This document shows positions 19,562 through 63,019 of a DNA stretch of 64,000 nt, piece after piece. Position 1 is the first letter of the stretch; every line of letters begins with the position of its first letter. This DNA is from Mytilus californianus. Lineage: Eukaryota. The position numbers and the translations under genes were made by a program. The DNA is taken from the NCBI RefSeq assembly GCF_021869535.1, contig NW_026262690.1:76756001-76820000 (forward strand), in the 5' to 3' direction. The notes beneath the pieces are model-generated. The model saw nothing but the letters and a program-made list of their open reading frames with translations, did no database searches and was not told where the DNA came from.

Positions 19562-20656
19562 TCAGGCTGGTAAATTCATATAGTAGTTCCCATATATACT
19601 TTGTTTTCTATCGTGTGTCATGGCTAACCACATTTTACTTATCTCTCGATCCTTTGCAGGAAAAACAAGATATTTACAGTTCTTACCATATCGTATATAG
19701 CAAGTATAAGCTTCTTTTGGCATAAATGTTAAATTAGGTCTTATACCTTCGTGAATAACACCGGGTATTCTAGATGGTAAAAGTCCAAAAAGAAAAAAAT
19801 CGTCTACCCAGAAAAATGGCGATCCAATAGCTGCACGATATAACATGGGTATGAGATCTATAGATATGAATACTGTAAAACCACTACAATATGTGTGGGG
19901 ATATAATTTCATGTCTTTAAACTCGTATTCATCAACGTACCATTTACTGGTATTTTTTCGTATGATTGCCATTGATCCTTTAGGGATTTTGTTACAATAC
20001 ATAGTCTTTTTCTTGTGTTTCAGATCTGACATATCTTCGAACAATTTAAAGAAATTAATAAAAGCATCATCGTCTATTTTAGCAACTAATTCAGCATTCA
20101 TACAATGTTCTGATATCCATTTGTATCCGGTAACTCCTTTATGTGTCAAATTTCGATAGGAATCTATAAAGTTTCCTTGTACTATATCTTTATATATTTT
20201 ACTTTCTTGTTCAAGTTTTAACTGTGTTATCAAATCAGGGACTAGACCGAGCAGAAACACAACCCTGACATTTTCGGGACTATAATATGTAGAATTAAGC
20301 CATGTATTCCTCATTCTGACTCGGCGTAGGAAATGACTCGGAGCTGTGTGGACGATAACTATCACAGACACCTTTTCTACTCCTCTGCATATGTCCTTGT
20401 TGTTTATTTTATAACCCTGTGACACAATAGGGTAAAATGTTTTTGATCTTATTGCTCGAGTATTCGGAGTACTGTGACTCTGTGGCGTTGGCTCTTCCAT
20501 CCATAGCATCAAGCGATTATTTACGTGGGCGCCATTTGAGAATATCGGGTTGCTTAATGGCGACATTAAATCGTTAATTATTGCTACACAGAAACATGAA
20601 AGTGCCACGAATACAACTAATAGCAAAAATTTTATATGTTGTGTTTCTTTCTTCAT
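19562..20656 (-). CDS. Beta-1,3-galactosyltransferase (GT31 / Galactosyl_T family), 364 aa, paralog 1
   Basis: Intact single-exon ORF. N-terminal type II signal anchor; RRxxMRxTW, VFLLG, DIVQGNFIDSYRNLT, KIDDD (DxD), YPHTYCSG and WVDD motifs. A 5'-UTR intron acceptor lies 39 nt upstream of the ATG (exon starts at 20695). Confidence 0.92.
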   Translation of the reverse strand: MKKETQHIKFLLLVVFVALSCFCVAIINDLMSPLSNPIFSNGAHVNNRLMLWMEEPTPQSHSTPNTRAIRSKTFYPIVSQGYKINNKDICRGVEKVSVIVIVHTAPSHFLRRVRMRNTWLNSTYYSPENVRVVFLLGLVPDLITQLKLEQESKIYKDIVQGNFIDSYRNLTHKGVTGYKWISEHCMNAELVAKIDDDAFINFFKLFEDMSDLKHKKKTMYCNKIPKGSMAIIRKNTSKWYVDEYEFKDMKLYPHTYCSGFTVFISIDLIPMLYRAAIGSPFFWVDDFFLFGLLPSRIPGVIHEGIRPNLTFMPKEAYTCYIRYGKNCKYLVFPAKDREISKMWLAMTHDRKQSIYGNYYMNLPA

Positions 20657-28389: not shown

Positions 28390-29248
28390 TTTTTGTCGAG
28401 CCTGCGACTTTTTTCGCAAAAGCGAGACATAGCGATCCTACATTCCGTCGTCGTCGGCGGCGTCCACAAATATTCACTCTGTGGTTAAAGTTTTTCAAAT
28501 CTTAATAACTTTCTTAAACTATCCTGGATTTCTACTTGGACTGAAGCTTGTTTATGATCATAAGATAGTATCCAGAAGTACATTTTGTAAAAAAAAAATC
28601 ATGTTTATCCGTATTTTACTCATAAATGGACTTAGTTTTTCTGCCAGTTAACATTACATTCACTCTGTGGTTAAAGTTTTTCAAATTTTAATAACTTTCT
28701 TAAGTATCCTGGATTTGTACCATACTTGGACAGAAGCTTGTTTATGATCATAAGATAGTATTCAAAAGTAAATTTTGTTAAAAACAAATCCTGTTTATCC
28801 GTATTTTACTTATAAATGGACTTAGTTTTTCTGCCAGTTAACATTACATTCACTCTGTGGTTAAAGTTTTCAAAATTTTAATAACTTTCTTAAACTATCC
28901 TGGATTTGTACCAAACTTGGACAGAAGCTTGTTTATGATCAAAAGCTAGTATCTAGAAGGAAATTTTGTAAAAAAAAATTTCCTGTTTTTCCGTATATTA
29001 CTTATAAATGGACTTAGTTTTTCTTCCAGTTAACATTACATACAGTCTGCAGTTAAAGTTTTTAAAACATTTATTAGATTCATAAACCATCCTGGATTCT
29101 TACCAAACTTGAACAGAAGCTTCTTACATTCAAAAGATAGTATCTAGAGGAAAATTTTTAATAATTATTTACCCATTTTTGTTGAGCCTGCGACTAACAG
29201 CAAAAGTAGGCAATACACTGGGTTCCGCGGAACCCTTACGAATTTTTT
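28390..29248 (+). mobile_element. HINE, same family as 14466-15160, with about 4-5 internal ~175-bp repeats
   Basis: ttttgtcgagcctgcgact ... ttttgttgagcctgcgact subterminal repeats, (GTC)n, tandem units, perfect 3' hairpin gggttccgcggaaccc followed by a T tract. Confidence 0.8.
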
Positions 29249-31167: not shown

Positions 31168-32292
31168 TCAATATAAACGACGAACATTTTCTTTATTAGA
31201 TGGCAAGTTCATGTAGTAATTGCCATAAATACTCTGCGTTCTATCTCTGATAACAGCTGTCCACATTCTGTAAATTTCTTTGTCTTTAGCTGGCATCACA
31301 ACATACTGACATTTTTTACCCTGTTCTTGATAACAATTAAAACCTTCTGGAAATCTCAACGTCAAGTTTGGTCGAAGGCCATCATGTATAACACCCTGAA
31401 CTTTGGACGGAAGTAATCCGAATAAATAAAAATCGTCAACCCAGAAAAATGGCGACCCAATGGCTGCATGATATAGCATTGGCACTAAGTCTGTTGACAG
31501 AAACACCGTAAAGCCGCTGCAGTACGTGTGTGGATATCTTTTCATGTCTTTGAATTCATCATTTTGAACAAACCACTTGCTGTCATTTTCTCGTATAATT
31601 TTCATTGAACCTTTAGAAATTTTATTACATTTGATATATTTCTTCTTTTCCTTTAAATAAGACATCTCTTCAAATAATTTAAAGAAGTTTATAAAAGCGT
31701 CATCATCAATTTTTGCAACAAATTCTGCGTTTCTACAATGTTCAGTAATCCATTTATATCCCATTACACCTTTATTTGTCAAATTTCTGTAGGAATCTAT
31801 GAAATATCCTTGCACTATATCTTTATAAATTTTACTTTCGTGTTCTAATTTTGTTTGTAAAATCGGATCAGCTACTAACCCCAATAGAAAAACTACTCGG
31901 ACACTCTCGGGACTGTAGTGTGTTGAGTTCAGCCATGTTGCTCGCATTCGGATTCTCCTTTCGAAATGCTTTGGCGCAGTGTGTACCATGACTATACAAG
32001 AAACTTTATCGACACCAGAGCAAATATCCTTATTGTTTATTTTGTACGGTCTGGATACCACGATAGGATAGGTCGTTTTAGACAATATTTTTCTTTTATA
32101 AACTGGGTGATGATGTTCTCTTGGTTCTTTGTCGATTTTCCATAACATCAACCGACTATTTATATGCTGTTTGTTATGCTGTACGTCAATATTAGGATAT
32201 CGCAAATCGTTTACAATTGTGAGAATAAAACATGCAAGAGCAACAACCGAAGTCAAAAGCAAAAATTTTAAATATAGGGTTTCTTTTGCCAT
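31168..32292 (-). CDS. Beta-1,3-galactosyltransferase (GT31 family), 374 aa, paralog 2
   Basis: ATG at 32292 (MAKETLYLKF aligns with MKKETQHIKF of paralog 1). Acceptor ttccag at 32328-32333 is 35 nt upstream, so the extra N-terminus in the ORF track is intronic. Same GT31 motifs as paralog 1. Confidence 0.92.
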   Translation of the reverse strand: MAKETLYLKFLLLTSVVALACFILTIVNDLRYPNIDVQHNKQHINSRLMLWKIDKEPREHHHPVYKRKILSKTTYPIVVSRPYKINNKDICSGVDKVSCIVMVHTAPKHFERRIRMRATWLNSTHYSPESVRVVFLLGLVADPILQTKLEHESKIYKDIVQGYFIDSYRNLTNKGVMGYKWITEHCRNAEFVAKIDDDAFINFFKLFEEMSYLKEKKKYIKCNKISKGSMKIIRENDSKWFVQNDEFKDMKRYPHTYCSGFTVFLSTDLVPMLYHAAIGSPFFWVDDFYLFGLLPSKVQGVIHDGLRPNLTLRFPEGFNCYQEQGKKCQYVVMPAKDKEIYRMWTAVIRDRTQSIYGNYYMNLPSNKENVRRLY

Positions 32293-34589
32293 TTCAGGAA
32301 TATCATTGTTGGTTTGAGAATTCACACCTGGAAATATCAATACATGTATATGAATGATTTTTTTCAAGCTTTGAAAATAAATATTTTTGTTTGTCTTTAT
32401 ATGGATTTTAGTTTCATGGAAGGCTGTATTGATATTTTTTTTTGTCAAGTTGTCAAAATGCAAATATCGAGAGCTCGTTTATATTGCGTACATGTATATC
32501 TATTCGCTGAATACCATCGAGTGACCCAAAGATGGATTAGTGAGTTAAGTATTGGGTAGTAAATATATATATATATATACATATCTTTCATAGGGTTTAT
32601 AGAAAATAATATAAAATAAAATAAAAAATATACTGCAATGGTAAAGCCGTTGTTATACTTATGAAAACGAGGAACAATTGTTCAAAAAGAAGTAAATATG
32701 CATACATATTTTTTAGATCTCAGACTCCCGTTCGTTTAATCATCAACAAAGCTTCGGTTTAACAGTTTCATTAACTTCTGTATGAAATTGTCTTAAATCT
32801 ATACATTTTAAGTAATCTGAACAATCAAAATCTCCGTAGATAAAGCTAAAGCGCTAAACAATTGCATTTAATAATAAAGAAAATAATTCTAGTCATAGAA
32901 ACCATTATTCTATCTACATGCTTGAGGAAGGAGTTGTTAACGTTAACATTTGAAGGAAAGGTTGTGCAAGATTGTGAAGTGCATACATACAATAGTGGAC
33001 TCCTATATAAGTTACTTACTTGAGTTTTTGGTTTATCTTCACTTCATAATCGGAGTAAAATTCACAACTGAAATGTCCCCGTTGAACGCCTAAAAATTTA
33101 CAATAAACAGTTGGCAATAAGTAACATTCAACCGACACGTGTTTAAGTATTTGCGGATTTCTTTCCAGTATCTTAAGCACGAAAAAAGAAAAAGAAAATA
33201 AACAAATAAATGAAATTATTATTTTTAAATTTTACCTTGGAAATCCACTTATTGCAATGAAGTCTAAATGTTCATTGATATCTCTTGAGTTTCCACTATT
33301 ATTACCCCTAGAAACCGATTTATACATATATTTGATTTGCAATACAGAAGTTGTTAATAACATATTACACTCAGGATATTATAAACCTTCAAGGAGATAT
33401 TGGTTAATATGTGTCCGGATTTAACCATTTATAATGTATTATGGACTATAGTAAGGTTAATATTATCAACACTGATCATTTGATAACCATTGATCAAACG
33501 GAGATCATTTAGGTTAGCCTGTAGCAATATATTTTCCTTTAAGAATTTTTACTGGTTTTAAGATATGGCCCAACGTTTCAATATATAATTAGAATATTTG
33601 TATTCATTATTTTTTTTTAAATATATTTCTGTACTTTAAATAGAGATTATCTGGACGTAATTACAAGACAAGACAAAATATTTCATTTCCTCAGACACAA
33701 TCGTGTACACGACACCCCGTGAAATAAACTGGCATGGAGGACTTATTGTGCTAATTTCATAGGGTGCGATGCTATCATGGAACTCTTTTTTTTTACCAAA
33801 AACTTTGAGGACTGTGGAATGTCAGCCATAATCAGGGTGAAATTTTCTTAAATAAAGTTTACCCCGTCACTGTTCATGTGGATTACTACTTTTCTTTTCG
33901 TGTCTTTAAATATTTACAAATGTTCTTATATCAAATGTTTCATGAGTTAGATTTTGTTCCTTGTTGAAGTTACACTGAAGTTGACATGTACAATACACTT
34001 TTCTTATATAAAGCTTATCCCTTCACTTTTGATGCGGATTCCTACATTTCTTTTAGTGTATTTAAACATTTAGAAATGTTCTTATATCAAACGTTTCATG
34101 AGAACGATTTTGTTTATTGAAGATACATTATTATGTAAATTAAACACGGTTATAACTAACATGTTAAAAAACATCTGATCAGAAGTCAAATCACGAAATC
34201 AAGAATAGAAAAATATAAATATATAGACACACATACCTCTCTTAACTACACACCACACCTTCGTCAACATTTACACACCCTTTAATATGTCTGAATACAA
34301 TTTAATTGTTTATAGTTCAATAGGTATTTTGAAAAGTAACCACCAGGTATATACGATAAGGTTAACACAGGTACTCAGCATGTATACCATTCAAGTTTTA
34401 CTGATCATGTGATTGACAAGGATTTAAATAATTTAAAAAGTTCTTCTGACATTTTGTACTGTAAAACTAATTTTAAACCGTTGAATTGCAGTATATGATG
34501 CTCTCTGATTCACAAAAGACCTGTTTTTGAAAGTTCGAACCCACAGGCGCTAAGGGCATGGGCCGTCCCCCCTTTTTCTTTTTATGTTT

Positions 34590-35269
34590 GATAAAATTGA
34601 GAATGGAAATGGGGAATGTGTCAAAGAGACAACAACCCGACCAAAGAGCAGAAAAAAGCCCAAGGCCACCAATGGGTCTTCAACACAGCGAGAAAATCCC
34701 GCAACCAGAGGCGGGCTTCAGCTGGCCCCTAAACAAAAATGTGTACAAAAATGTGTGAACCAAGGCTCCGTGTAGAAGGCCGTACTTTGACCTATAATGG
34801 TTTACTTTTACAAATTGTGACTTGGATGGAGAGTTGTCTCATTGGCACTCATACCACATCTTCTTATAAATGGACGTCAAAATAAACTCCGAAACATATA
34901 AATGAACTAGTCTAAGAATTTAAAAAAACATACAAGACTAACAAAAACCAGAGGCTCCTGACTTGGGACAGACGCAAAAATGCGGCAGGGTTAAACATGT
35001 TTTGTGAGATCTAAACCCCCCTTTATACCTGTAGCCAATGTAGAACAAACACACAGCAATACGCACATTAAAACTCAGTTTGAGAGAAATCCGAGTCCGA
35101 TGTCAAAATAGGTAACAGAAGAAACTAAGCAAAATGACAATGATACATAAATTAACAAATGACTAGTAGCAGTTACCGACACGCCAAATCCAGACCTCAA
35201 TTAAACTGATTGAAATATTATGTCTTCATCATATGGAAATCAAACACAATCCCTCCCGTTAGGGGTTTA
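34590..35269 (-). mobile_element. Penelope-like retroelement, 3' non-coding / terminal-repeat part (left half of the split element)
   Basis: Ends ...ccctcccgttaggggttTA at the composite-transposon boundary and continues as TAgtatcata... at 46921. That the two halves are contiguous in the family consensus is from memory. Interrupted by a repeat fragment at about 34755-34868. Confidence 0.6.
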
Positions 35270-35626
35270 CACTACCAAGAATTTACCAACGTTTTTTTGG
35301 TACATTTCTACCCTCGTACATATCAGTACTGTTCGGCAAGACTAAAAACTTGTAATGTTATACTTTCTATTAATTCAGTACTGTTTATTATTATACAAAA
35401 ACTGTACAATTACTAATTCTATAAATTCAGTACTGATTTTTTCAGTACTGTTTCAATACTGATTTCGTCAGTACTGTTTCAGTACTGAATTTGTCAGTAC
35501 TGTTTCAGTACTGTTTCAGTACTGATTTCTTCAGTACTGTTTCATTATGATACTGATTAAGTCAGTACTGTATCTGTACGGAATATTTCATTACTGTTTT
35601 AAGTATATTCTTACTTTTTTTCAGTG
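35270..35626 (+). repeat. Left arm: CACTACC...TTTTTCAGTG MITE-like unit with CAGTACTG arrays
   Basis: More than ten (T)CAGTACTG palindromic octamers at about 10-21 bp spacing; inverted homolog at 46426-46920. Confidence 0.85.
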
Positions 35627-36538
35627 CATGGATTAATGTGTTCATTTAAAAAAAGATGTCATTTCTTTAAGTACGTAGCTGTGCACTTTAGTTTATTTAT
35701 CTTACAATTGGTTACAATGTTTACATTTGAATGCATACAGTGATGCCAATTTGAAAATAAAAAGAACTGAAAAACTAATCAACTAGGTAATTATGTATTA
35801 ATAGCAAAATTAAGGTATCGGTGGTCTTAGGTTGTTTTGTACATTTGGGTTGGGTTAAATGTTCTCTTTGACACTTACCCCGTTTCCATCCTTTTCTATA
35901 CTGTGACATGTTGATGATTTCGTTATGTTTTTTTATTTCTCTGATTTTTTGTTCTGATTTTGTTTAACTTTAGGTCCAGCTCTTCAACAGTTATTTTAGC
36001 TGTTTTTTTTTCAATATTTTGGCATTGTCAAATTTGCATCTCATTCTGGTGCGGTCAATTGATATGGTTTATGTTTTTAGTAAGTTCTTATTAATATAGG
36101 TTTTATATTTGACAATATCATATTACATGTATTTGTGTCTTGCTTGGGTCAAATCAAAACATATTTAACAAGACTTGAACATTGGAACTGGGTATATTAC
36201 TTTTGAGAAGATGGATTGGTGGATGTTTTGTCATCCAGTGGCAAGTTAAGTGCATAATCAGAACGAGGACTTGATACTCAGATATAAATGATGACACTAT
36301 TTTTTACTAGACCAATATTACACACTGAGCTGAATTTTTACATGCTAGTTCACCACAAGGAGAGAATCTGCTAGAAGACATGTCATCCTAACTGGACAGG
36401 TACCTTAAGACTAAACAGTCTATGTTTTTTCTCCTTAAAAAAGTTTACGCTGCATGTGTGCTGAGGGAATAATTATAATACAACCACTTTTCCAGTCATA
36501 ATTCTCATAAATACATTTCCGTTTATTTGCCCACTGTA

Positions 36539-36746
36539 AGGGAGCTACCATTTGATTTTTAGGGGGGTGGGGGGGGGGGGGCTAGGATGAAAAATTTTGT
36601 CCTGCATTTTTTTTTATAGTTGTAATCTGTCCTGCCTTTTTATTTTTCACTGTGTTCGGTCCTGCTTTTTTTTTTTAAGTTTATCCTGACTTTTTTTTAC
36701 CTAACAACTCCTGTCCAGCCTATTTTTTTCAAATTTCATCCTAGCC
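36539..36746. mobile_element. Truncated AGGGAGCTACCATTTG MITE
   Basis: One TIR plus internal tcctgc subrepeats, homologous to 42049-42299. Confidence 0.75.
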
Positions 36747-38249
36747 AGTAAGAATTAATAGGTATCCTGTTAACAGGAAGTTGAATGGGTGAATTTTAAA
36801 CTGCATTACTCAGTAAATCATGTTCACATGAGGACTGATGACTTTCAGGAATCTCTTGATTTGTAATTCCTCAGAAAACTGTGATGGATTTGCATATTAC
36901 AGACATACAGAGGTTAAAAAAGTATCAAAATCTAAAGACCGATTTCCAACAAAATGATTTTAAAATGTCTGAAGGATGTCATTTGGTACATAAATTTATA
37001 ACCTTTTTGATTTTTTAGCATAAATTCCCACAAAAAGACCTTCTCCTTTCATGAAAAATGACTTAATCAAATATACCTCACATTACAAATTACATAAACT
37101 ATTACAAGTTATATGGATTTGAGTTACTTTTTGAAAATATTTCAATACTAGTACTAAAAAACATGATTATTAATTTTACATTATTCCTGACAATTGTGGT
37201 CAGGTGGCTATGTATGTATGTATGTACGTAGATCCCTCCGTTTACGGAGCACCCATCGAGAGCTGCAACTGTACAGTGGAATCCGTGTAGTGACACTCCC
37301 TATCGGGATTAATGGCGATGTGTCACTAATGTACATTTGTTGACCATTAAAATACATGCTTTGCTCATCAACATTGATTTTTTTGTTAACTGAATAAAAC
37401 AAGATGAAGATCTCAAATGTTTAACTTTCTCTTTTTATCTACTGTATTCACTTCCATTGCAAGTACAACAAACAGTAATCTTAAGAATGAACAGCATGAT
37501 ATAGTTACATGTAAAATTTCTCTCTCAATTTAATGTTTTTAATCACTGTTTTATAATTCTGCTTCAGTGTTATTTTGCACTGCTCTTCCACTGTATGTGA
37601 TATCACATATCTTCGCCAACTTGTTTCTGAAAAATAAAAGGTTGATTATAACACTGTCAGATTTCAATGTTATCATGTTTGTTAAAGTCCAATAATAAGG
37701 TCAACTATAGGTCAACCATAACATAATATGTATGGTGTACATGCATTGCTAAAGGTGGTATTACGTAAATAAAGGTTCATATTATCATGGAGAAAAATGA
37801 AAAAAGAATGGAATAATGTATGGGTTACCTACTTGAAAACTGATCTAATACGATTGGGAGAAAAATTTTAGCGCCCCAAGTCTGGGTTGGCAAATTTCCA
37901 TGTTTTCAATATAGGCTGCACTCTGACATTCTTAAATGGTTTTGTTATAAATTATGCCGTTAACTTTTCTAAATTGAATTGTTTCATATTTTTCATGTCT
38001 TCGTCTTTTGTAGCCGACTATACGGTATGGGTTTTCTCATTGTTGAAGGCTGCACAGTTGCCTATGATTGTTAATATCCACTTCATCTGAAATTTGGTGG
38101 GTAGTTGTCTCATTGGCAATCATACAACATTTCATTATTTTATACAGCAGTTTAAAATTTTTAAAAAAGTATTCTTCTTGTTGAATTTTTCATTATTTGT
38201 AACAGTGGCAATTCTGATTAAATTATCATTTCAATCTGTAATCCAGTTT

Positions 38250-38900
38250 CAGAGAAGGAGATATTTGTTTAGATTTCCTTTAGGTTCATATGTTAAACTA
38301 TCATGTCCTGATGTGACACTCATCTTTGGATCGGCACCAAAACAAAACATAATCTGATCATTCGAGCACAATATCAATGCAATCTGTCAAACAGTTAACT
38401 GAGGTTTTGTGTACGGATATGTACTTCCTATAGGATTCTTTGTGTACCATATTGACATCTTTCAATTGTTGAATGCTGCTCTCTATTCTTTTGAATTAAT
38501 CGTTGTTGGTTTGTTGTCTCATGAGCGCACTAGTTTTTTAGTTGCTGATCTATGCCTTTATTTCCCTCATAGACTTATTCTTTTTGTTCTGGTGGGATCC
38601 ATTTTTGGAAACCTATAACAATTGATACTGCATCAAATATTTTGCATCAATTTGTAAAAAGTTGTTATTCCCAACATGCTTTTTATGGTATTATTTATGA
38701 ACCTAATACTTTATAAATTGTCATTTGAAAAAGTACATCATGAGAGAAAGATTGTATCGAAGTGTTACAAAGTTCTGTCAAGTGGTCCATGAGCAATTGA
38801 TGACACATGGGACATAAGGACAAAAGGACAGACTCCCCCATCATTAAATACATGTACCATACCCTTTAGCAGGTGGGTTAAGTCGCCACATACACGAACA
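38250..38900 (-). pseudogene. Decayed B-box/coiled-coil (TRIM-like) coding remnant
   Basis: Broken minus-strand frames: LCPMCHQLLMDHLTELCNTSIQSFSHDVLF, KKHVGNNNF...VSKNGSHQNKK, and RIESSIQQLKDVNMVHKESYRKYISVHKTSVNCLTDCIDIVLE, with many stops. Pattern recognition only. Confidence 0.3.
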
Positions 38901-40709
38901 GGAATAAAAGTGCCTGTCCTAATTCAGGAATCTTTGGGAAATAGTGGTCAATTGAAATATTATAACACATTTATATAACAAGAGTGTCCACGCTGAAATG
39001 TCGTGCCTGCTTTACTGACCATGCACTATTTCTTTTGAAAGTTTAATGCATAAAAGTACCACAGAAACTTGACATGTTCAATGATCCATGACAATGAAAT
39101 TAGAGTCTGTCAAATTATGACAGTCAATTCTATAATCATAGATTAGACAGTCCATATATCACGATAATGACCAGTTTTTCAATAACTATTATATAATTAA
39201 ATTGTTTTGAACATGCATGTAATATTTGCCACTGGACATTAAGCACATTTTGAATACATGTATTGTAAGTACTTTATGAATATGTTAGTATTTTTGAGGA
39301 CTCTCACTGACTCAGTAGGATTATTTTTATATAATGGGATTATCCTCTTGAAATAAAGATTATTTATACGAAATTTTGTTCAATAATTATGTGTCGGATT
39401 ATTAGGGTGTCGGTTCATTGGGTCGTCGGACTTTTGGGGTGTCGGACTAATGGAGCCTTGAACCGACATAAATTCAATCATTGACCAATAAAAAAAAATA
39501 TATTTCTACAAAGTGTATGTACATGATCTCTTCATATAAATTTCACATGCAGTTTCCCTTGTAGTATGAAAACCAGGACAAGACCTGTTCAAACAGGAAG
39601 ATTAAGAAAGCAAAGAAAACTGTGCACTTTATAAAAGGGTCTGGATGGGGTTTCTTCATTTCTGTATTCTTTAATATTTTATACCATTTTCACTATTTAT
39701 TATAAATTTTGCCTGTTATTCTCTTTTCTTTATATTCAAGCACCATATTATTCTCTATTTTTCATGGCTACTTCATAAAGACAACAAAGGGACTGATATG
39801 AAAGCCTGCCATTCTAAAGTTGCATTAAATCCGTGAAAAAAGAAGGGACATTGGATAATTGTCTGTTTTCTGTTTCTTGGTCTTTTCTCACTTGCCGTTG
39901 GAGGCAAAATTTATGTCTCTTTAGTTTGTATCTTATTATAAAAGAATATAGGTGAAAAATATAATCCCGCTAACATGTTTAACACCGCCACATTCTGTAT
40001 GTATGTGACTGTCCCAAGTCAGGAGCCTGTAATTCAGTGGTTGTCGTTTGTTGGTGTGTTACATATTTGTTTTTTGTTCATTTTTTTTGTACATAAATTA
40101 AGCTGTTAGTTTTTTCGTTTGAATTGTTTTACATTTGTCATTTCGGGGCCTTTTATAGCTGACTATGCGGTATGGGCTTTGATCATTGTTGATGGCCGTA
40201 CGGTGACCTATAGTTGTTAATTTCTGTGTCATTTCGACATTTGGTCTCTTGTGTAGAGTTGTTTCATTGGCAAACATAACACATCTTCTTTTATATAAAC
40301 AAATATATGCAAGTCTAACGTTCTGTTACCCCTTATGGAACCCGTTTGAACTAAATTCCAAAGGAAAGACATTTTTTGAGATAATAATTTTTTTGTCTTA
40401 CACATAAATGTCAACATGCATGTGAACCAAATGTATACACATTTATTGTTTGTTTGAAAAGGCAATTTGGGTGAAAACAGTTGTGAATTTGACTGCATAC
40501 GTCTGACGTTAACGGAATCAAAAAGGTAGACTCTAAGGTAATTTTATACTGTAACTTTATGTGCTAAACCGTTATATAATCCAGATGACACTGAGGAAAA
40601 AATCATTCATTGACATTGTTAATATTCTATTCTTTTCTTTTTTTTTTGGATGTATTTTTCTTAATAATTACATGCATGAAGTGTGTATTTATGTTCAGAA
40701 AAATAATTA

Positions 40710-41182
40710 GAGTGAGGTGCACATATTCGCCGGGGACACAATTTCGCCGTTTTATGATTTTGAGGTGTAAAAACTTCAAAGGATGGATGAAATGGAAGAA
40801 ATATGACGGTAAATTATATTTTTATAACAAATATGATTATTTTTTAAACTTAGACAAAATTTTGGCACTCAGCGCAAAGGACCAAAAAAAACGGACAACG
40901 TTTTGATAAATATTGTTTTAAGCTGCAGTTATGTTGTTTTAAATAGATGTGTAAAAATGGCGAATATGTGTCCCCCTTTGACAAAACATCAGGAAATTTC
41001 AAATTGCCTTTAATCTAACTTTTCAGATGAATTTTTTTCAAAGAAACACGTTTTCAAGCTAAGAATATTTTTCTTTTGATGTTATCTTCATATAGAAATA
41101 TCAGTATACTTCAAAAACATAAAGACCTGAACATAAACTGCAGAAAACATGGAAAATTATGGCGAAAATGAGCACCCCACTC
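40710..41182. mobile_element. MITE with about 22-bp TIR and TA TSD
   Basis: TA|GAGTGAGGTGCACATATTCGCC ... GGCGAAAATGAGCACCCCACTC|TA. Confidence 0.75.
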
Positions 41183-42048
41183 TACTGACTTAGCACTAAA
41201 AAAGTGCATTGAAATAGGATCAAATAGGCCTAGTTTTTTGTCGAAATAGAAGACAAAATATAAGAAATTATATCAGGATGTTCACAAAAAAAAAAAAAAA
41301 ACGAGTAAAAGTATGATTTCTTAAGTTTGTAAAACTTACATGAACAATAGCAATTCGTAGACGATTCGAAAAGGACCCTCCATCTCTGACTTGTCGTGGA
41401 AATCGTCTGTTTCTATAACTTTAAGACTTTTTGCAAGTGGCTTGTAGAACAATATTTTCTCTGTTGTAGTCTCAAAATCTTGCCGTCCTCTTGCTGAGTT
41501 TTTGTCTTGCTTTGTCGCACCAAAAGCATATTGACGTTTCATATCTGTGACGTTGCAAAACTTGTGCCTCTCTGTAGAACAGCGCTTTCCCGCCGTCCAT
41601 AATTTTTCCCGCGTCAATTGAGCCGTAATTATGAAAAGCGATGTAAAAGTAATTGTATGAAAACTATTGCTCTAAGATTGTTATAAACGATGTTTTTAAT
41701 ACAACATTATTTAAAAATACAACTTTTAACCTTGAAATATAGTTTTTTTTTTTTATCTTTCTTGTCTTTATAAAAAAAAATGAAAATAATATACCCATTG
41801 CTACTAGCCATTTATAAGCGCTTTTGTTTTATCTTTGTCAAGTGAAATGCATAACTGATTCTTAACCAAGTTGGCAAGTATTTCATGCAATATTTAGGAC
41901 GTATGAAATTTAATGTACAATAAATCTGTTGCTCAGTGGGTCCTACAAAGTAAAAGATCTGTGATGAATGGCTCAAAATTGAGGTTTTGCCAAGTGCTGG
42001 GAAAGGATGATTTGTAGGATAGGAAAAAAATCATTTGGTCACCTACTT

Positions 42049-42299
42049 AGGGAGCTACCATTTGATTTTTATGGGGGGGGGCTAGGATGAAAAATTTTGT
42101 CCTGTCTTTTTATTTTTCACTCTATTCGGTCCTGCATTTTTTTATGTTTATCCTGACTTTTTTTTACCTAAATTGTCATCCTGACTTTTTTTTTTGCAAG
42201 TGTCTCATCCTGCCTTTTTTTGTACTCAAAACTCCTGTCCTGCCTGTTTTTTTTCAAATTTCATCCTAGACCCCCATAAGAATCAAATGGTAGCTCCCT
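42049..42299. mobile_element. Complete MITE with TIR AGGGAGCTACCATTTGATT(T/C)TTATGGGGG (possibly Kolobok-like)
   Basis: About 40-bp inverted termini; T/A-rich flanks; partial copies at 2671-2882 and 36539-36746. Confidence 0.8.
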
Positions 42300-43208
42300 T
42301 ATTTAACATCCCCATTTCGAATGAAAATAAATATTTTTTTAGATTAATGCTTCAATGATGAAACGGGAATAAAATGTATTGAAATATCGTATGGCAGTAC
42401 AAGTATATCGGGTAAAATTTGTGTACTTTTACAAAAAAAATTCTTCACTGAGAATTCAATCGCGGCATTTGAGTCCTAAAGAAATTTTCCAGTTCTCTAA
42501 AATAAAGCGTGTATTGTGTATATATTAGTATTTCGCGTAATCAAGTATAACAGTTACCTTTTCTATGATTATTTATTAGGAATGCGATTATTATATGAGA
42601 TATTCTGATTGAAAGATGTATGAAAAAAACTGACGTTTAACAAATTTCTCGAAAGTACTAGTATGCAACATTTTACATGAAAATGACGAACTAGATAATT
42701 AGTAAACACGTTAAATAAGTTGGTATTACAGTACTAACAAGCTTATGATCCTGTATCAATTTTTGTCATCCGTTTTAAGTATACAAATAATGCATTTAAT
42801 TCAGTTTGCTTCATGACCTTCATTCCCGCCAAAATCGTCCTTTTGGCGCCGTCTTTTGACATAGTCAGTGCTCCTCAGGATTGTGACGTTACTATGGACC
42901 TTTGACGTTCTACACAATCAACAAGATTTGTGTGTAGAAGCCATAAATGTCCCTTTGGCAGCAAGAGGGTTAATATTGAACATAGTATTACAATTGCCTA
43001 CGTTTATGTGATTGGATTTCATGACGTCATTCATTGTTTACAAACGTTATTTTTGCACTCGCACTGACATTTCAACAAGTCAACAGTTCAAACTTCTTCT
43101 GGACAAAAGGTATGGTATATATTGAAGACATTGAATATTTTAAAACTGAGAAAATTGTCGCATGGCTAATTTAAAACACATATCCTAAGTAGGAAAATAC
43201 GCGTTACA

Positions 43209-43375
43209 CATTGGCGGATCTAGGGGGGTCCGGGGGTTGGAACCCCCCCCCCTTTTATTGGACGATCAATGAATTTGAATGGGGACATATAGTTGGACCC
43301 CCCCCCCTTCCCCGACCCTAACCTTTTATCCAGTGTTGGGAAACCTCTTTTAAAAAATGGCTGGATCCGCCCCTG
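43209..43375. mobile_element. MITE CA(TT/GG)GGCGGATC.AG family with 6-bp TSD GTTACA
   Basis: CATTGGCGGATCTAG ... CTGGATCCGCCCCTG; GTTACA at 43203-43208 and 43376-43381. Degenerate second copy at about 43679-43820. Confidence 0.7.
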
Positions 43376-46300
43376 GTTACAGAACTTTAACTGTATAAAA
43401 TGCCAAAATCAATGCCATGGCATTTGTAAAATATTAATGGAGACGCTAAATCGTGGGTTGTTTTAGTCCAAATAATTATGACGTCTTGGAAGGCTATTTT
43501 AAATTTTTGCTTTGACGCCTTCCTGCGAAAAAAATATAATAGCCTTTCAAGACGTCATAATTTTTTGGACTAGGGTTGTTTTGAATATTCATATTATTAC
43601 TACTTGACCAAACGTTATGATATTTGAGAATTATAAATCCTGAATGTTTCTGAACATATGATAAGGAAAAGGGGGTGGGCATCGGCGGATCCAGGGGGAG
43701 GGGTGCGAGGGTTGGAACCCCCTTTTTTTTTGCGATTAATGCATTTGAAAGGGAAAATAAATTTGGGAACTCTATCTCCTGATTTTTGATCCCCTTTTTA
43801 AAAATTGCTGAATCCGACCGACACATGCTCATTTCCTCAAATCCTGTGTTTTTGTCACACAGTATTTTTTTCCGATCTTTTCCCACTTCCCACTTCTTTC
43901 TCTTCTGTCCCGATCCCACTTGTTCCTATTTTGACCGTTTTTTTTACTGATGCTTCATTTATTTGTGATACATTTTGATATTAGTCCACCATTGTCCCAG
44001 GTGCCTTATATAATCCCGCCACATTGACTGCTATATATTGTTTATTATTTTTCTTGTTTGAAATGTTTACAATAACATTTTAGTTACTTTTGGATTTTTT
44101 TATTCAGCCATGCTGGATCTATGCGATCACTCTGGTTTTGAAGATGGTGCAAAATACTAAGTTTAAGATATATCATGAAACTAATTATGTGTTTTTATGA
44201 CTTGCAGAAACTTTCTACACCATTTTAATCATCAACTGCAAACTTTTGAAATGTTATAATTATTATAAAGAGCACATAAATAGACTGATGGTTAAAGCTA
44301 CATGTGCATGAAATATTTGTCACTGGCAAACACCAATACTTCGAGGTTGATGGATTTAATTATCATATTTTGCTTTTTTTATTTAGGAATAAATTCTCAG
44401 AATGATTAACAGCATAGAAGACAGCCGTTGAAATGGGAACGTACGATGTGAAAATTAAAGACCTATATACAGAAGGATGTATTTTAATATGGCATTCATC
44501 AGAAAAGACAATATTTAATCATAAACCATGTAATTCCGAGTTTCGTACAAGTACCAAAACATAAAAGATGGATGCTTGTAATGAGCTCATATTAGAACTA
44601 GGGAGTCCGCTGGAATTACCAATCTACATGTAGCAAGACACATCATATGTGAGACTGAATTGAGGAAAAGACACCAGCCAGGAAACTGACATTTTATAAA
44701 GCATTCCAAAGAAAAGATGGCAAAGGGGGAGAGCAATAAAACATGATACAAGCAAAATTAAGTGTTTCTTTGATTGTTTTATTTATGAACCTTAATTACA
44801 AGGGTCATAAAATAATCAAGGGGTTATATAGTACAATTGTATCCTAAGTTTCTGCTGAATTTAACTATATGTTGTACTTAATATATATCAACAGAAATAT
44901 TCTTTAAATAATTTAAAATGTGCGAATCTTATTCCACCGTTATATAAAAAAAATGTAGTGGTGCTTGCAGGCAATATTTTATGAAAAATTGTTTTTAAAT
45001 TCACCAAAAACTTGCTACATAGCAAGAATACGCCATGTTTGCCAGCTTTTACATAAATAAAAAAAAACTTAAATGTCACTGGTACATCCATATGAAATAA
45101 AGTCTGCTGCTGCCAAAAATCAAGATTACAAACTATGTTTCTAAAAGTAGATTACAACAATACTGAACTCTGAAAAATTTTAAAAAGCGGGGAAATTTCA
45201 TAAACATCTGGCAAAACCAAACGCTAAAGCACATAAAAATAGCAGAACGAATGGAAAACAACCGTCATATTCTTAACTTGGTAAAGGCATTATCTTAATT
45301 TTCTCATAATAATCCTCCCAGTATTTCAAGTATTCTTACTCTGAAAGGAAAATATGAAAGAAAAATCATTTGCAACTTTACAAATTATCGGCATGAAAAT
45401 GATTGACATTTTTGTCACAGACTTCATATGTTTATTTGACAATAAAGATTATTATATTAAAACAATTGTGATGATAAATAAAAGAAATAGTTATGATAAA
45501 AAAAAAGGAGATGAGACATTGTTTTATGTTAATTACAATACATTGCCTAACATATTAACATATGGAATCATTAATGTCAACATGTTTTAAGCAATAGCAA
45601 AATACCAAAAATGAACAGTATTGAAGATTCTTATCTTGTTAGATATTTGTATAAATTGTGCGGTTTTATACACATTGATATTGTAAAATATCAGCCTCGA
45701 ACCACAATGTAAATCTCTCTGGTGTCGATTGCGTATTTTTTTTAAACACAGAAAGACAGTCGCAATCAAAATCAAGGAGTAAACAAAGACTCATAAAACC
45801 AAAGTGCATTTACAACAACAGTTAAAATACATAAAAAGAAACAATACCAACTCGACTAAAAACCGGGAATGAATTCATGTGCTTCTAAAGGGTAAACAAT
45901 TCCCTTGAGAAAATCTGATAAACTGCTTATCTTGCTTCATTTTTGTTGTTTTTCCCTTCACTTCAATAGTTTTTTGATAGACGAAAGTAAGCTTGATACT
46001 TTTCCTCAGTCATTTTCACGTCGCCAAAAATTCCTGCTCAGTAGAGTGATATAGTCGAAGAGAAAAACCATAAGTTTTAATATGTAACCAGCTAAATGAG
46101 GAGTATAATAATATAGTCACAGAATTATCCAACCTATTTTTGGATACCAATTGTACTCAGATGCACATTTGTCAAAATTTCTCTTATGATAGAGGTCAAC
46201 ACTGAATCAGCGATGTCTACACAAGATACAAAATATAAAAAAATATAAAAAAGAGTCATCAACATGTCAAAATATACCATACTATACTTACTTAGTTTAT

Positions 46301-46425
46301 AAGTTTTCAGTTCCCAATATTTTTTGAAACAATATGCATTCAGATTAAAAAGATAAACCACACCAAATCGACTGCTACAGCTATACCTAAAGAAACAACT
46401 ATTTTTGATATATGGATAAGGTGCG

Positions 46426-46920
46426 CACTAAAAAGTAAGTATTTACTAAAAAAGTAAATGACAAACATCAGTACAATACTAGGACTAATAAAATCGGTAC
46501 AATTACAATACTAACAAAATAAGTACTAAAACATTACTGACAAAATCAGTACAGAAACATTACTGACAAAATCAGTACTAAAACATTACTGACAAAGTCA
46601 GTACTGAACTAGTACTGACAAAATCAGTACTGAAACAATACTGACAAAATCAGTACTGAAACAGTACTGTCAAAATCAGTACTGAAACAGTACTGTCAAA
46701 ATCAGTACTGAAACAGTACTGACGAAATCAGTACTGAAACAGTACTGAAAAAAACAGTACTGAATTTATAGAATTAGTTACGGTACAGATATTGTATAAT
46801 AATAAACAGTACTGAAATAATAGAAAGTATAACATTACACATTTTTAATCTCATCAAACAGTACTGATATGTACGAGGGTAGAAATGTACCAAAAAAACG
46901 TGGGTAAATTCTTGGTAGTG
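46426..46920 (-). repeat. Right arm of the composite element (inverted copy of 35270-35626 with an expanded CAGTACTG array)
   Basis: CACTAAAAAG ... CTTGGTAGTG; about 140 bp longer than the left arm, mainly from extra 21-bp units (acattactgacaaaatcagtactga). Confidence 0.85.
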
Positions 46921-48082
46921 TAGTATCATAAAATATATGAGAAGAACATAACCCGTATCATGCCAAAAAACTGGTTTTAGAATAAATGTGTTTATTTCCG
47001 ATGCAAAGACCCTATGAGTGAATCAATATTAATTCCAAAATATGCCATCTTTTATGACCTGACAACATGCAGTATCGTAACTATATCCCTTCTGAATAAG
47101 TCTGTTTAAAGGTTTGGTTAGCTTTTGAGGTGAATGACGACATTTTTGAGATTGTAAAGAATATTACCATAAAATATTGGATGTGAAATACCTGAACGTA
47201 TAAGATGTCTGCATGTTGATTTATATTTACGAATGATGTCCTTGTACCAATGATAAAATCTAGTAAATGTTTTGACTAGTTTGTGATATTGAAAACCCTG
47301 GTGTAATAAATTTTCAGTAATACAGAGATTTCTTTCGTTAAAATCAAATACGTTGTTACATACACGAGCGAATCGAACAAATTGAGATACACCATAAAAT
47401 GGTGACAAGGGAACTTCACCATCTAAAAATGGATAATTAACAATAGGAAAAGAAAAATCATCTATTTTATCGTAAATTTTGGTATCAAGCTTCCCGTTAA
47501 AGATATAGATATCAATATCCAGGAAAGGGCAGTGTTCATTGTTAGTATTAGCTTTATTTAAAGTCAGTTCAACAGGATAAATCTCTTTAGTGTACACACT
47601 GAAGTCGTCATTATTGAGAGCCAATATATCATCCAAATATCTAAAAGTGTTATTAAATTTTTATATCAGATGCTGTTTCGGTGGGTCTTTGCTGATTTTA
47701 GTCATAAATTGTAACTCATAACAATACAGAAACAGGTCCGCAATAAGTGGTGCACAGTTAGTCCCCATTGGAATTCCGATAACTTGACGATATACGGAAT
47801 CTCCATAGCGAACAAAAATGTTTTTCTAGTGAAAATTCAAGTGCAGTTATCGTATCAAAGCAGGTCCAATTGACACAGTTTTGAGTATGTATGCGACAGA
47901 TTTCCGTACGGACAGTAAAAATTGGTACAATTTTCAATAAATAATATTACAAAAAAGCAGATATATTATTATTGATGTAAGGAAATACGCATTTGAATTT
48001 CTCTGGTTAAAACTGGTTAGTCAGATTTTATTTGAAATCATACGAAGTGTATTGCTTTCTTTGTGTGTTAATGAGTCTGGTT
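46921..48082 (-). mobile_element. 5'-truncated Penelope-like retroelement reverse transcriptase (probably Naiad-type), pseudogenised
   Basis: NIFVRYGDSVYRQVIGIPMGTNCAPLIADLFLYCYE...RYLDDILALN...FLD...IYDKIDDFSFPIVNYPFLDGEVP...SQFVRFARVC; in-frame stops; no GIY-YIG visible after the RT; truncated at the poly-C at 48083-48103. Confidence 0.85.
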
Positions 48083-52340: not shown

Positions 52341-53216
52341 GGTGGTCCTTAACACTACAGGGAGATAACTCTGTCAAAATCAGTTGAACGTTTTAATCAC
52401 GTTCTATTAAGGAAATATTAAGCTTTTCAATGATCAAAATTAGTGTTTGTCAAACTGGTATATATCCAATGAAAGGACAAGGTACGATAAGCCCCCGTTT
52501 TGGCCCCCCTATTTTCTTATTTTTCAAATGTTGCTTTGGAAAGCTACTTATCATGCTAAAATATTCCCTTAGGTTTGAAGTTTGTTTGGATGAACTTCAA
52601 AACATTTAATTTCAGCAACTGGGTGGGGTGAGGGGGGGTAAACTTTCCGTTATTATTCAGATATTGTAATTATTATTCACTTTGGAGGTGTTCAGTACAA
52701 CGATTTTTTAGTTTTTAAGTGCCTGCGCCAACGTGACCCAGGAATTGTTTAATTACAATGTCATTATCACTGTTTTTGCTGTCTAGATCGCCATAATTTT
52801 CTCCGGGTCACGTAGGCGCACGCTATTAGATTTTAAGATACACAGGCCAAAAATCGTAATTTTTCCTACTTTTGGCGTTTTTGATGCCCTTTCACCCCCC
52901 TCAATTCACCTAGTTGCTGAAATTAATGGTTTTGAAGTTCATCCAAACAAACTTCAAACCTAAGGGAATATTTCAACATAATAAGTAGCTTTCCAAAACA
53001 AAATTTGAAAAATGAGAAAATAGCCGGGGGGTGGGGGGGGGGGGGGGGGGGGCAAAACGGGGGCTTATCGTACCTTGTCCTTTCTCCGATAAAGTGTGTG
53101 GTTCAACTTTTTTGAAATTTTTATATTTTTGTCAAAGGGTCCAAGTAAATATTTTGTCAAAATTTTATGAAAATTAAACGAGCCAAATTAATTTTAGTCG
53201 AGGTGTTTGTACCACC
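52341..53216. mobile_element. TTAA-flanked non-autonomous DNA transposon (Kolobok-like GG...CC ends)
   Basis: TTAA|GGTGGT ... ACCACC|TTAA (TTAA at 52337-52340 and 53217-53220). Hosts a nested foldback element. Confidence 0.65.
52471..53084. mobile_element. Nested foldback MITE with about 160-bp TIRs
   Basis: GAAAGGACAAGGTACGATAAGCCCCCGTTTTG ... CAAAACGGGGGCTTATCGTACCTTGTCCTTTC, with an inner inverted block (ctaagggaatatt/aatattcccttag, gaagttcatccaaacaaacttcaaac). Confidence 0.85.
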
Positions 53217-54816: not shown

Positions 54817-61691
<6,875 letters not shown>

Positions 61692-61948
61692 TTTAAATCA
61701 GCCATATCCAATGAGTTCTTACATTATGTATGGTGATCACGTTATGCTCCTGACATTATTGGAAGTCCGTTGCGCTGCAGCCTCCATAGTGACGTTTGTG
61801 CTACAATGACGCCGACATTTTGGTTGCTCATGGTTCTAATCATTGTGTCTCGTTTTGATGTTTGATGTCAACAGAGAATGCAGTAAAAAAATAACAAGCT
61901 TCGAGAATGAGGAAATTGTAAATTCAAACAAGCCAAACACAATTGTTA
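61692..61948. promoter_or_regulatory. Probable bidirectional promoter and 5' UTRs between the two divergent TSSK genes
   Basis: 257 bp between the ATGs; repeat-free and GC-richer than its surroundings; half-CRE TGACG at 61790 and 61807 and near-CRE TGATGTCA at 61863. Function is inferred. Confidence 0.6.
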
Positions 61949-63019
61949 ATGCTGCCAGAAAAGCGGTCCAAGAAGAGGATGGCTGAGGAGAGTTCAGCGA
62001 AGGCTGACAAATTACTTGCAGAACTCGAGCTTATGCAATCAGAACTCGAACAAGTCGATGTGAAGCGATCGTTATCCTCAAGGAATGAAACCGTAACTTA
62101 TAGACCAACTTACCGTGCCATTTTAGCAAAGAAAGGATATTTAGTGAAACAAACTCTTGGCAGCGGAAGTTATTCCAAAGTTAAGTATGCACATTGCTTT
62201 AAGCATGATCGTGATAAAGTTGCTGTAAAAATAATAGACAGAACAAAAGCACCGAAAGATTTTCAGCACAGATTCCTTCCTCGTGAAATGGAGATATGGC
62301 CTAAACTGCGTCATCCTCATATCATTCGTATGCTAGATATATTCGAGGATAGTAGACGTGTGTATATGATATTAGAGTTCGCAGAAAATGGTGATGTTCT
62401 AAGATACATTCAGCGAAATGGAGCTATCAAGGATATCATTGCTCGTTCTTGGACACGTCAGATTTGTGAGGCAGTACGATATCTCCATGAACAAAACATT
62501 ACTCACAGAGATCTCAAGCTGGAAAACCTCCTATTAGATGGTACCCACACAATAAAGATATGTGATTTTGGCTTCGTTAAAGAGGACTGTATGCGGGATC
62601 TTAGTAGAACTTACTGTGGCTCGAAGTCATACGCTGCTCCAGAAATTTTGAAAGGAGAGCCCTATGACCCTAGAAAAGCAGACATTTGGGCTATTGGAGT
62701 GATTTTATATATTTTTGTTACCGGTAAAATGCCCTACGATGAAAGTAAAGGAAATCAGGGTGTGTTAGAGGAACATAAACGTTTGAACTTCCCATGGCAA
62801 AAGTTTAAGAAAAACGTGTCAGATGATTGCCGTTGTTTAATTTTGTGGTTGTTTTCCTATGATTATAAAGACAGACCAGATATCTATGAGCTCCTTGGTT
62901 CTCCGTGGTTTAAGCAAGATGTAAAAATACGACCCGAAAACGTCAAGATGGAAGGAGCAAGTCGAAAATCAGAGAAACAAGACAAAGAAGCGCCCTCCAC
63001 AAGTGAACATGCTGGGTAA
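61949..63019 (+). CDS. TSSK4: Testis-specific serine/threonine kinase 4-like, intronless, 356 aa (346 aa from the second ATG at 61979)
   Basis: Intact kinase domain: LGSGSYSKVK, VAVK, FLPREM, GDVLRYIQRNGA, HRDLKLENLLLD, DFG, TYCGSKSYAAPE. GDVL..IQR.GA and HRDLKLEN match TSSK4 as recalled; the subfamily call is less certain than the family call. Confidence 0.85.
   Translation: MLPEKRSKKRMAEESSAKADKLLAELELMQSELEQVDVKRSLSSRNETVTYRPTYRAILAKKGYLVKQTLGSGSYSKVKYAHCFKHDRDKVAVKIIDRTKAPKDFQHRFLPREMEIWPKLRHPHIIRMLDIFEDSRRVYMILEFAENGDVLRYIQRNGAIKDIIARSWTRQICEAVRYLHEQNITHRDLKLENLLLDGTHTIKICDFGFVKEDCMRDLSRTYCGSKSYAAPEILKGEPYDPRKADIWAIGVILYIFVTGKMPYDESKGNQGVLEEHKRLNFPWQKFKKNVSDDCRCLILWLFSYDYKDRPDIYELLGSPWFKQDVKIRPENVKMEGASRKSEKQDKEAPSTSEHAG

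Follow-up and report, generated by a model that had tools for sequence, protein, structure and literature searches.

The element and its insertion site

The stretch of Mytilus californianus DNA analysed here (RefSeq assembly GCF_021869535.1, contig NW_026262690.1, positions 76,756,001 to 76,820,000), hereafter the window, is 64,000 nucleotides (nt) long and contains no N; all coordinates refer to it. Positions 35270–46920 are occupied by an 11.65-kb element with the features of a CACTA/EnSpm-like transposon, composed of two inverted arms and a 10.8-kb interior (35627–46425), and inserted into a retroelement. Reverse-complemented, the last 18 nt (ending at 46920) are identical to the first 18 nt (from 35270), and the first mismatch falls at position 19. 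Both termini thus carry the CACTA motif within a short, perfect 18-nt terminal inverted repeat (TIR), as in EnSpm/CACTA elements. The left arm (35270–35626, plus strand, 357 nt) bears this terminus at 35270–35287 and the right arm (46426–46920, minus strand, 495 nt) at 46903–46920. The two arms share 92.4% identity across the outer 236 nt, and it is the extent of an array of 26-bp units that makes their lengths differ.

Both arms are rich in the palindromic 8-mer CAGTACTG, with 13 copies at 35324–35596 in the left arm (at most one mismatch, partly arranged in 26-bp units) and 20 copies at 46532–46866 in the right arm, compared with three copies in the whole interior. In EnSpm/CACTA elements, short subterminal repeats extend through several hundred bases at each end (PMC8978399), and the arms show this arrangement with a 26-bp period. 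By analogy with the CACTA subterminal repeats, the 8-mers are putative binding sites of a helper protein or of the transposase (PMC8978399). The left arm folds strongly (z −8.3) because of its palindromic repeats, and folding was therefore discounted as evidence. Exact-pattern scans of the termini and arms against metagenome, viral and prokaryote collections gave either no match or chance 18-mers with unrelated flanks.

The dinucleotide TA stands on both outer flanks of the element (35268–35269 and 46921–46922). Beyond it lie the two parts of a minus-strand retroelement, which we take from its motifs to be Penelope-like: a 3′ non-coding part (34914–35269) and a part coding for reverse transcriptase (46923–47882) with an open frame at 47118–47636. 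This frame has 68 relatives, the longer of which show weak RVT_1 matches. When the element was deleted in silico, three independent relatives of the retroelement aligned continuously over the rejoined junction, with identities of 84% over 912 nt (L007), 78% (L005) and 74% (L006). L007 spans the empty site with exactly one TA, and the more distant L005 and L006 require short gaps near the junction. The single-TA read-through in L007, together with the continuity of the relatives, indicates an insertion accompanied by a 2-bp duplication and not an artefact. A target-site duplication (TSD) of 2 bp is the standard for animal EnSpm/CACTA elements (PMC1636069); in this case it is known from one site, and the palindromic TA also fits an element beginning with A and ending with T that entered between T and A without a TSD. 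An earlier note on this stretch had described the perfect termini, the arms of 357 and 495 nt, the TA on both outer flanks and an EnSpm/CACTA-type 2-bp TSD, and had stated that removal of the segment would rejoin a Penelope-like element; all of this is borne out, the TSD at the single site of L007. Misassembly, which the same note had named as a possible refutation, is very unlikely, as the arm–interior junction recurs in independent runs and the retroelement is cleanly split. A piggyBac identity of the outer element was rejected on account of its flanks, which read TTTA/TAGT and not TTAA. A very abundant dispersed repeat (34591–34868) adjoins the 3′ part of the retroelement, and loose ends are numerous at 34591 and 34867.

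Inner ends of the arms

Each arm also carries an end-like motif on its inner side, as the earlier note had proposed. The left inner end (35603–35626, minus strand) repeats the outer-end motif in an inverted, degenerate form in which the A run is longer, and the right inner end (46426–46446, plus strand) is likewise degenerate and follows the outer-end pattern. By plain local alignment these inner ends are weak, with a score of 32 that is matched by unrelated T-rich sites. When both strands of the 64 kb are searched with the pattern CACT-N(2-12)-AAG.AT.TAC, chosen post hoc with the data already viewed, the only matches are the four arm ends; the expectation from shuffles is 0.185. This four-end pattern suggests that each arm possesses an inverted, degenerate second end, the spacing of which was altered by the lengthened A run.

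The flank pairs of the individual arms are TA/CA for the left arm and CG/TA for the right arm, and hence no matching TSD surrounds either arm, in agreement with the earlier description. The arrangement is that of a macrotransposon or composite element, namely, two double-ended elements with one outer TSD and none around each, the inner ends here being degenerate. The mismatch at the arm level may be what two inverted elements leave after a joint move, and inner flanks of CA and CG, not TA, would fit a 2-bp TSD of variable sequence. Mariners of the inverted repeat/direct repeat (IR/DR) type have inner and outer binding sites arranged as direct repeats. The inner motif of the mussel element is inverted, and an IR/DR mariner layout was therefore rejected.

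Copy number and divergence

Contigs from three DNA runs (X1, X5 and X10) were placed on positions 33900–39850, together with reads from one RNA run. The depth data thus refer to 35270–39850 of the element, with contig depth as a rough measure of copy number. The left flank showed a depth of approximately 8 in X1 and 43–67 in X5 (7.3 and 28–58 where set against single interior contigs), and long single contigs of the unique-looking left interior reached 78–91 in X1 and 390–520 in X5. From this flank-relative contig depth, the left interior (35627–39850) is present in approximately 6–12 copies per haploid genome, the spread arising because a flank contig may stand for one or both haplotypes. In X10, the interior assembled at a depth of 5–12 while the flank did not assemble, the behaviour to be expected of a repeat when a sample is shallow. 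The long contigs of the interior family diverge from the window copy by approximately 1.0%. Amplification of the interior together with the ends, the mark of Pack-TYPE and Pack-TIR elements, was therefore observed for the covered part of the element.

One X5 contig (record 17) runs over the left inner end at 35626 with a depth of 519 and zero differences. The depth of the inner part of the left arm relative to that of the interior was 152 versus 155 in X1, 12 versus 17 in X10 and 1906 versus 914–1437 in X5. The crossing contig and the inner arm that is not clearly deeper indicate that position 35626 today lies inside the family unit. In X1 and X5 the depth of the outer arm exceeded that of the interior by a factor of 4–10, which was not the case in X10; repeats partly inflate this ratio, and other elements may share their outer end with this family. 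In the read placement, no loose ends or joints were detected at 35269 or 35626, the tables being swamped by very abundant neighbouring repeats, and the placed contigs revealed no second insertion site.

Three levels of divergence were distinguished: approximately 1.0% within the family interior, 7.6% between the paired arms and 11–27% between the interior and its relatives from other samples. By this measure the arm pair appears to postdate the separation from these relatives, in keeping with arms that joined DNA already old. An X1 contig at a single-copy depth of 6.9 is approximately 8% diverged from 37584–37954, and a low-copy X5 contig is diverged to the same extent at 35734–35920; these contigs possibly represent the donor locus, or else an older copy or subfamily. 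The earlier note had proposed that two MITEs (miniature inverted-repeat transposable elements) moved about 10.8 kb of intervening DNA as one unit. Two parts of this proposal stand, the inverted arms that look once self-contained and the cut-and-paste insertion; the private, one-time move of the interior block does not, in view of the copy number, the low divergence and the absence of a contig breakpoint at the inner end.

Several further observations were made on the placed contigs. Private alleles of the window copy are missing in X1 and X5, which hints that this insertion is absent there, although contigs drop rare variants. A 908-nt contig of X1 (depth 17) matches 35505–35726 only, with its first 686 nt unplaced, which suggests a variant of low copy number whose left arm is different or interrupted. 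X10 contains approximately 116 extra bases relative to the window at 38532–38535, inside an exon-like stretch (approximately 38424–38617), the frame of which resembles a broken coiled coil.

The interior

Approximately 35% of the interior consists of recognizable nested repeats. Pfam searches of 181 stop-free interior pieces gave nothing below an E-value of 0.016 and no transposase or helper domain, consistent with the earlier note, which had recognized no transposase inside. The internal transposase gene of an autonomous EnSpm/CACTA element is thus not found among these pieces. Rfam gave no match over 33–49 kb, and searches of interior pieces against a protein atlas and a word index were blank, which carries little weight for short pieces. 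No intact gene was found in the interior, the exon pieces having been searched separately and not as a joined spliced model.

Among the nested repeats is a non-coding element at 41487–42973, presumably piggyBac-like from its TTAA/CCC ends; its right end is followed by TTAA, its left end is decayed, and it carries within it a 251-nt inverted-repeat element (42049–42299). The interior also holds small nested inverted-repeat elements or fragments at 40710–41185, 36539–36764 and 43464–43572. DNA relatives in other samples (L018 and L019–L024) were reached through a full-library protein search. L018 contains, at 879–2294, a separate copy of the nested element of approximately 1.5 kb, bordered on either side by TTAA and set in different surrounding DNA. 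L019–L024 (0.6–1.3 kb, in six short assemblies) share 95–99% mutual identity where compared and 73–89% identity with the window. They represent the state before the piggyBac-like insertion, with two head-to-head first-exon-like pieces approximately 300 nt apart, a promoter-like region that the nested element splits in the window.

A promoter-like block at 42990–43110 contains a palindrome similar to the cAMP response element and a CCAAT box, and ends at a plus-strand splice-donor-like site. This block shows approximately 98% identity in the six relatives from other samples, compared with 81–86% in the neighbouring intron-like and repeat blocks, suggesting a putative promoter under selection. 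The putative first exon of a minus-strand transcript lies at 41339–41468 (ATG at 41383, donor at 41339), with 85–88% identity in the relatives. The minus-strand frame contains a stop in one relative, and the plus-strand ATG is absent in another. A putative downstream exon (37520–37626, minus strand) has a strong acceptor at 37626 and trace minus-strand RNA at a depth of approximately 1. Over the unique interior, RNA depth was 0.4–1.7 in 6% of one run, all on the minus strand. The exon-like pieces and the conserved promoter block, examined as a possible host gene fragment, matched no known protein in these searches of separate pieces. A 93-amino-acid frame at 41336–41617 was rejected as a gene, since its homologues split into two halves; it is a chimera, one half belonging to the nested piggyBac-like element and the other to the older body. 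Taken together, the interior is decayed, repeat-laden DNA with an old putative promoter and trace transcription.

Origin of the element and alternative explanations

We consider the element to be a young, multi-copy, non-autonomous CACTA/EnSpm-like transposon of composite origin, that is, a large Pack-CACTA, with a probability of roughly 0.55; the cargo is likely of host origin. On this reading, two CACT-ended elements of 0.35–0.5 kb would have inserted in inverted orientation approximately 11 kb apart in ordinary genomic DNA. Their inner ends, as now seen in the sequence, would then have degenerated while the outer ends stayed perfect, backed by their arrays of 13 and 20 palindromic 8-mers. 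A CACTA transposase and a helper supplied by another element could bind these arrays, as in CACTA biology (PMC8978399), and pair the two intact outer ends, so that the arms and the cargo would move as one piece. The unit appears to have multiplied to its 6–12 copies, as the left half indicates, before this copy entered the Penelope-like retroelement and, judging from the empty site, duplicated TA. The probable order of events begins with old DNA containing a two-way promoter (11–27% from its relatives), followed by nested insertions, then by the two inverted arms (at most 7.6% apart), by amplification (approximately 1%) and, last, by the insertion of the present copy.

Several points weigh against this explanation. 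Neither a donor locus nor a solo arm was seen, and the presence of L019–L024 in six short assemblies, two of them inactivated, also fits an older repeat family. The rough contig depth covers 35270–39850, and the age argument is void if the arms have been homogenized. Pairs in the plant model are mostly direct (27 of 28), and an inverted pair requires a transposase that accepts two ends of the same type. That transposase would have to come from a matching autonomous element elsewhere. A different explanation, possible if somewhat doubtful, is that the unit is an ordinary large CACTA/EnSpm element after loss of its transposase. The arms would then correspond to extended terminal and subterminal sequence, the motifs at their inner ends to additional binding sites, and the interior to the element's own decayed body (promoter and helper-gene exons) laden with nested repeats. 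The multi-copy and cohesive family, the promoter block conserved at 98% between samples and the recurrence of interior relatives in shallow assemblies, some inactivated, are all in favour of it. Opposed to these are the 181 interior pieces without a transposase or helper domain, the inverted copy of the terminus that closes both arms on the inside and an arm–arm divergence smaller than that between the interior and its relatives.

The structure may also be read as above with a TA-specific transposase of the Tc1/mariner type, and not a CACTA enzyme, as the mover. The sole observed TSD is TA, as in Tc1/mariner elements, although from one site; the CACTA ends, the inner flanks CA and CG and the inner motif, which is inverted and not direct as in IR/DR mariners, make this mover improbable. 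A single move of a private 10.8-kb block by two MITEs that still exist as free elements, leaving a unique hemizygous region, agrees with the terminus-like inner ends and with the deeper outer arm in X1 and X5, which other elements may share. This one-off reading is already largely refuted by the multi-copy interior in three runs, by the inner part of the left arm, which is not clearly deeper than the interior, and by the contigs crossing the inner end; we regard it as very unlikely. In favour of an assembly artefact or a chance inverted pair, the window does contain common repeats paired in inverted orientation at a distance of 13 kb. Such an origin is hardly credible for a cleanly split retroelement with a single-TA empty site and an arm–interior junction found in independent runs.

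Other features of the window

Two repeats at 14466–15160 and 28390–29247, which we assume to be of the Helentron-associated type, are inverted copies that contain 191-bp central arrays, a microsatellite of GCC/GAC and a hairpin at the terminus. A galactosyltransferase gene lies between them; no common TSD was seen at their outer ends, and they are probably independent insertions. Two single-frame Galactosyl_T (PF01762) paralogues, at 19562–20656 and 31168–32463 (minus), show 71% identity over 300 nt. Protein kinase frames at 54817–55257 (minus) and 61943–63019 (plus) point away from each other, and a 525-nt foldback occupies 52504–53028, with 139-nt arms that are 88% complementary.

Significance and comparison with known systems

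Mussels possess a large hemizygous, dispensable genome fraction, and the paper describing it left the role of transposons in its origin unresolved (PMC7653742); in oysters, transposable element insertions drive hemizygosity (10.64898/2026.02.10.705023). A multi-copy Pack-CACTA-like unit with 10.8 kb of cargo, if correctly identified, would offer a concrete and checkable route for shifting gene-sized blocks, limited here by a cargo without an intact gene. To a reader, such interiors give the impression of single-copy DNA, and repeat annotation can overlook them. More speculatively, and in our view rather unlikely, inverted pairs of small CACTA-type elements may routinely make self-spreading 10–50-kb host blocks in mussels, with live promoters and sometimes genes, as a main source of the hemizygous and dispensable DNA; the present family would then be datable and its donor findable.

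The mechanism closest to the one proposed is the Pack-CACTA model of plants, in which chromosomal DNA between neighbouring insertions is captured and the internal TIRs are deleted or mutated (PMC6379663, PMC8903248). The mussel element resembles Pack-CACTA and other Pack-TYPE elements in being non-autonomous, in its CACTA ends and in its later amplification as one unit. It differs in its animal host, in a TSD of 2 bp compared with 3 bp in plants, and in its inverted pair, plant pairs being mostly direct. It also keeps both internal ends recognizable, has no identified gene fragment or donor, and carries a 10.8-kb cargo, whereas neighbouring Arabidopsis copies lie 38–2137 bp apart. No description of such an element in Mytilus emerged from literature searches, the coverage of which was incomplete.

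In maize, Ac/Ds macrotransposons of 10–28 kb excise and reinsert (PMC9910405). As proposed for the mussel element, the ends of two elements carry the intervening DNA with one outer TSD, and the number of copies can rise. Those macrotransposons are hAT elements with an 8-bp TSD, known as laboratory alleles, in contrast to a natural CACTA-ended family of approximately 6–12 copies. With such systems known in eukaryotes, the bacterial composite transposon invoked by the earlier note is an unneeded analogy (PMC6379663, PMC8903248, PMC9910405).

Among animals, TRC elements of the CACTA/EnSpm type have a 2-bp TSD, a short TIR with internal repeats and spliced transcripts (PMC1636069, PMC4298943), but are CCC-ended and code for transposase, unlike the CACTA-ended mussel element, in which none was found. 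Under the Repbase rule, a non-autonomous element matches the classified family at terminal positions 1–11 and has the same TSD length (PMC4455052). In published animal Pack-TIRs, the captured DNA has a median length of 224 bp, and the survey of reference genomes revealed multiple copies for only four of them (PMC8277862). They share with the mussel element the TIR transposon ends around duplicated non-transposase DNA, in some cases transcribed, and are attributed to gap filling or template switching in one element, not by two whole elements. The mussel cargo, if correctly read, is approximately 50 times the median Pack-TIR cargo. Composite capture is a mechanism already known from plants, but rarely seen at such a size in animals.

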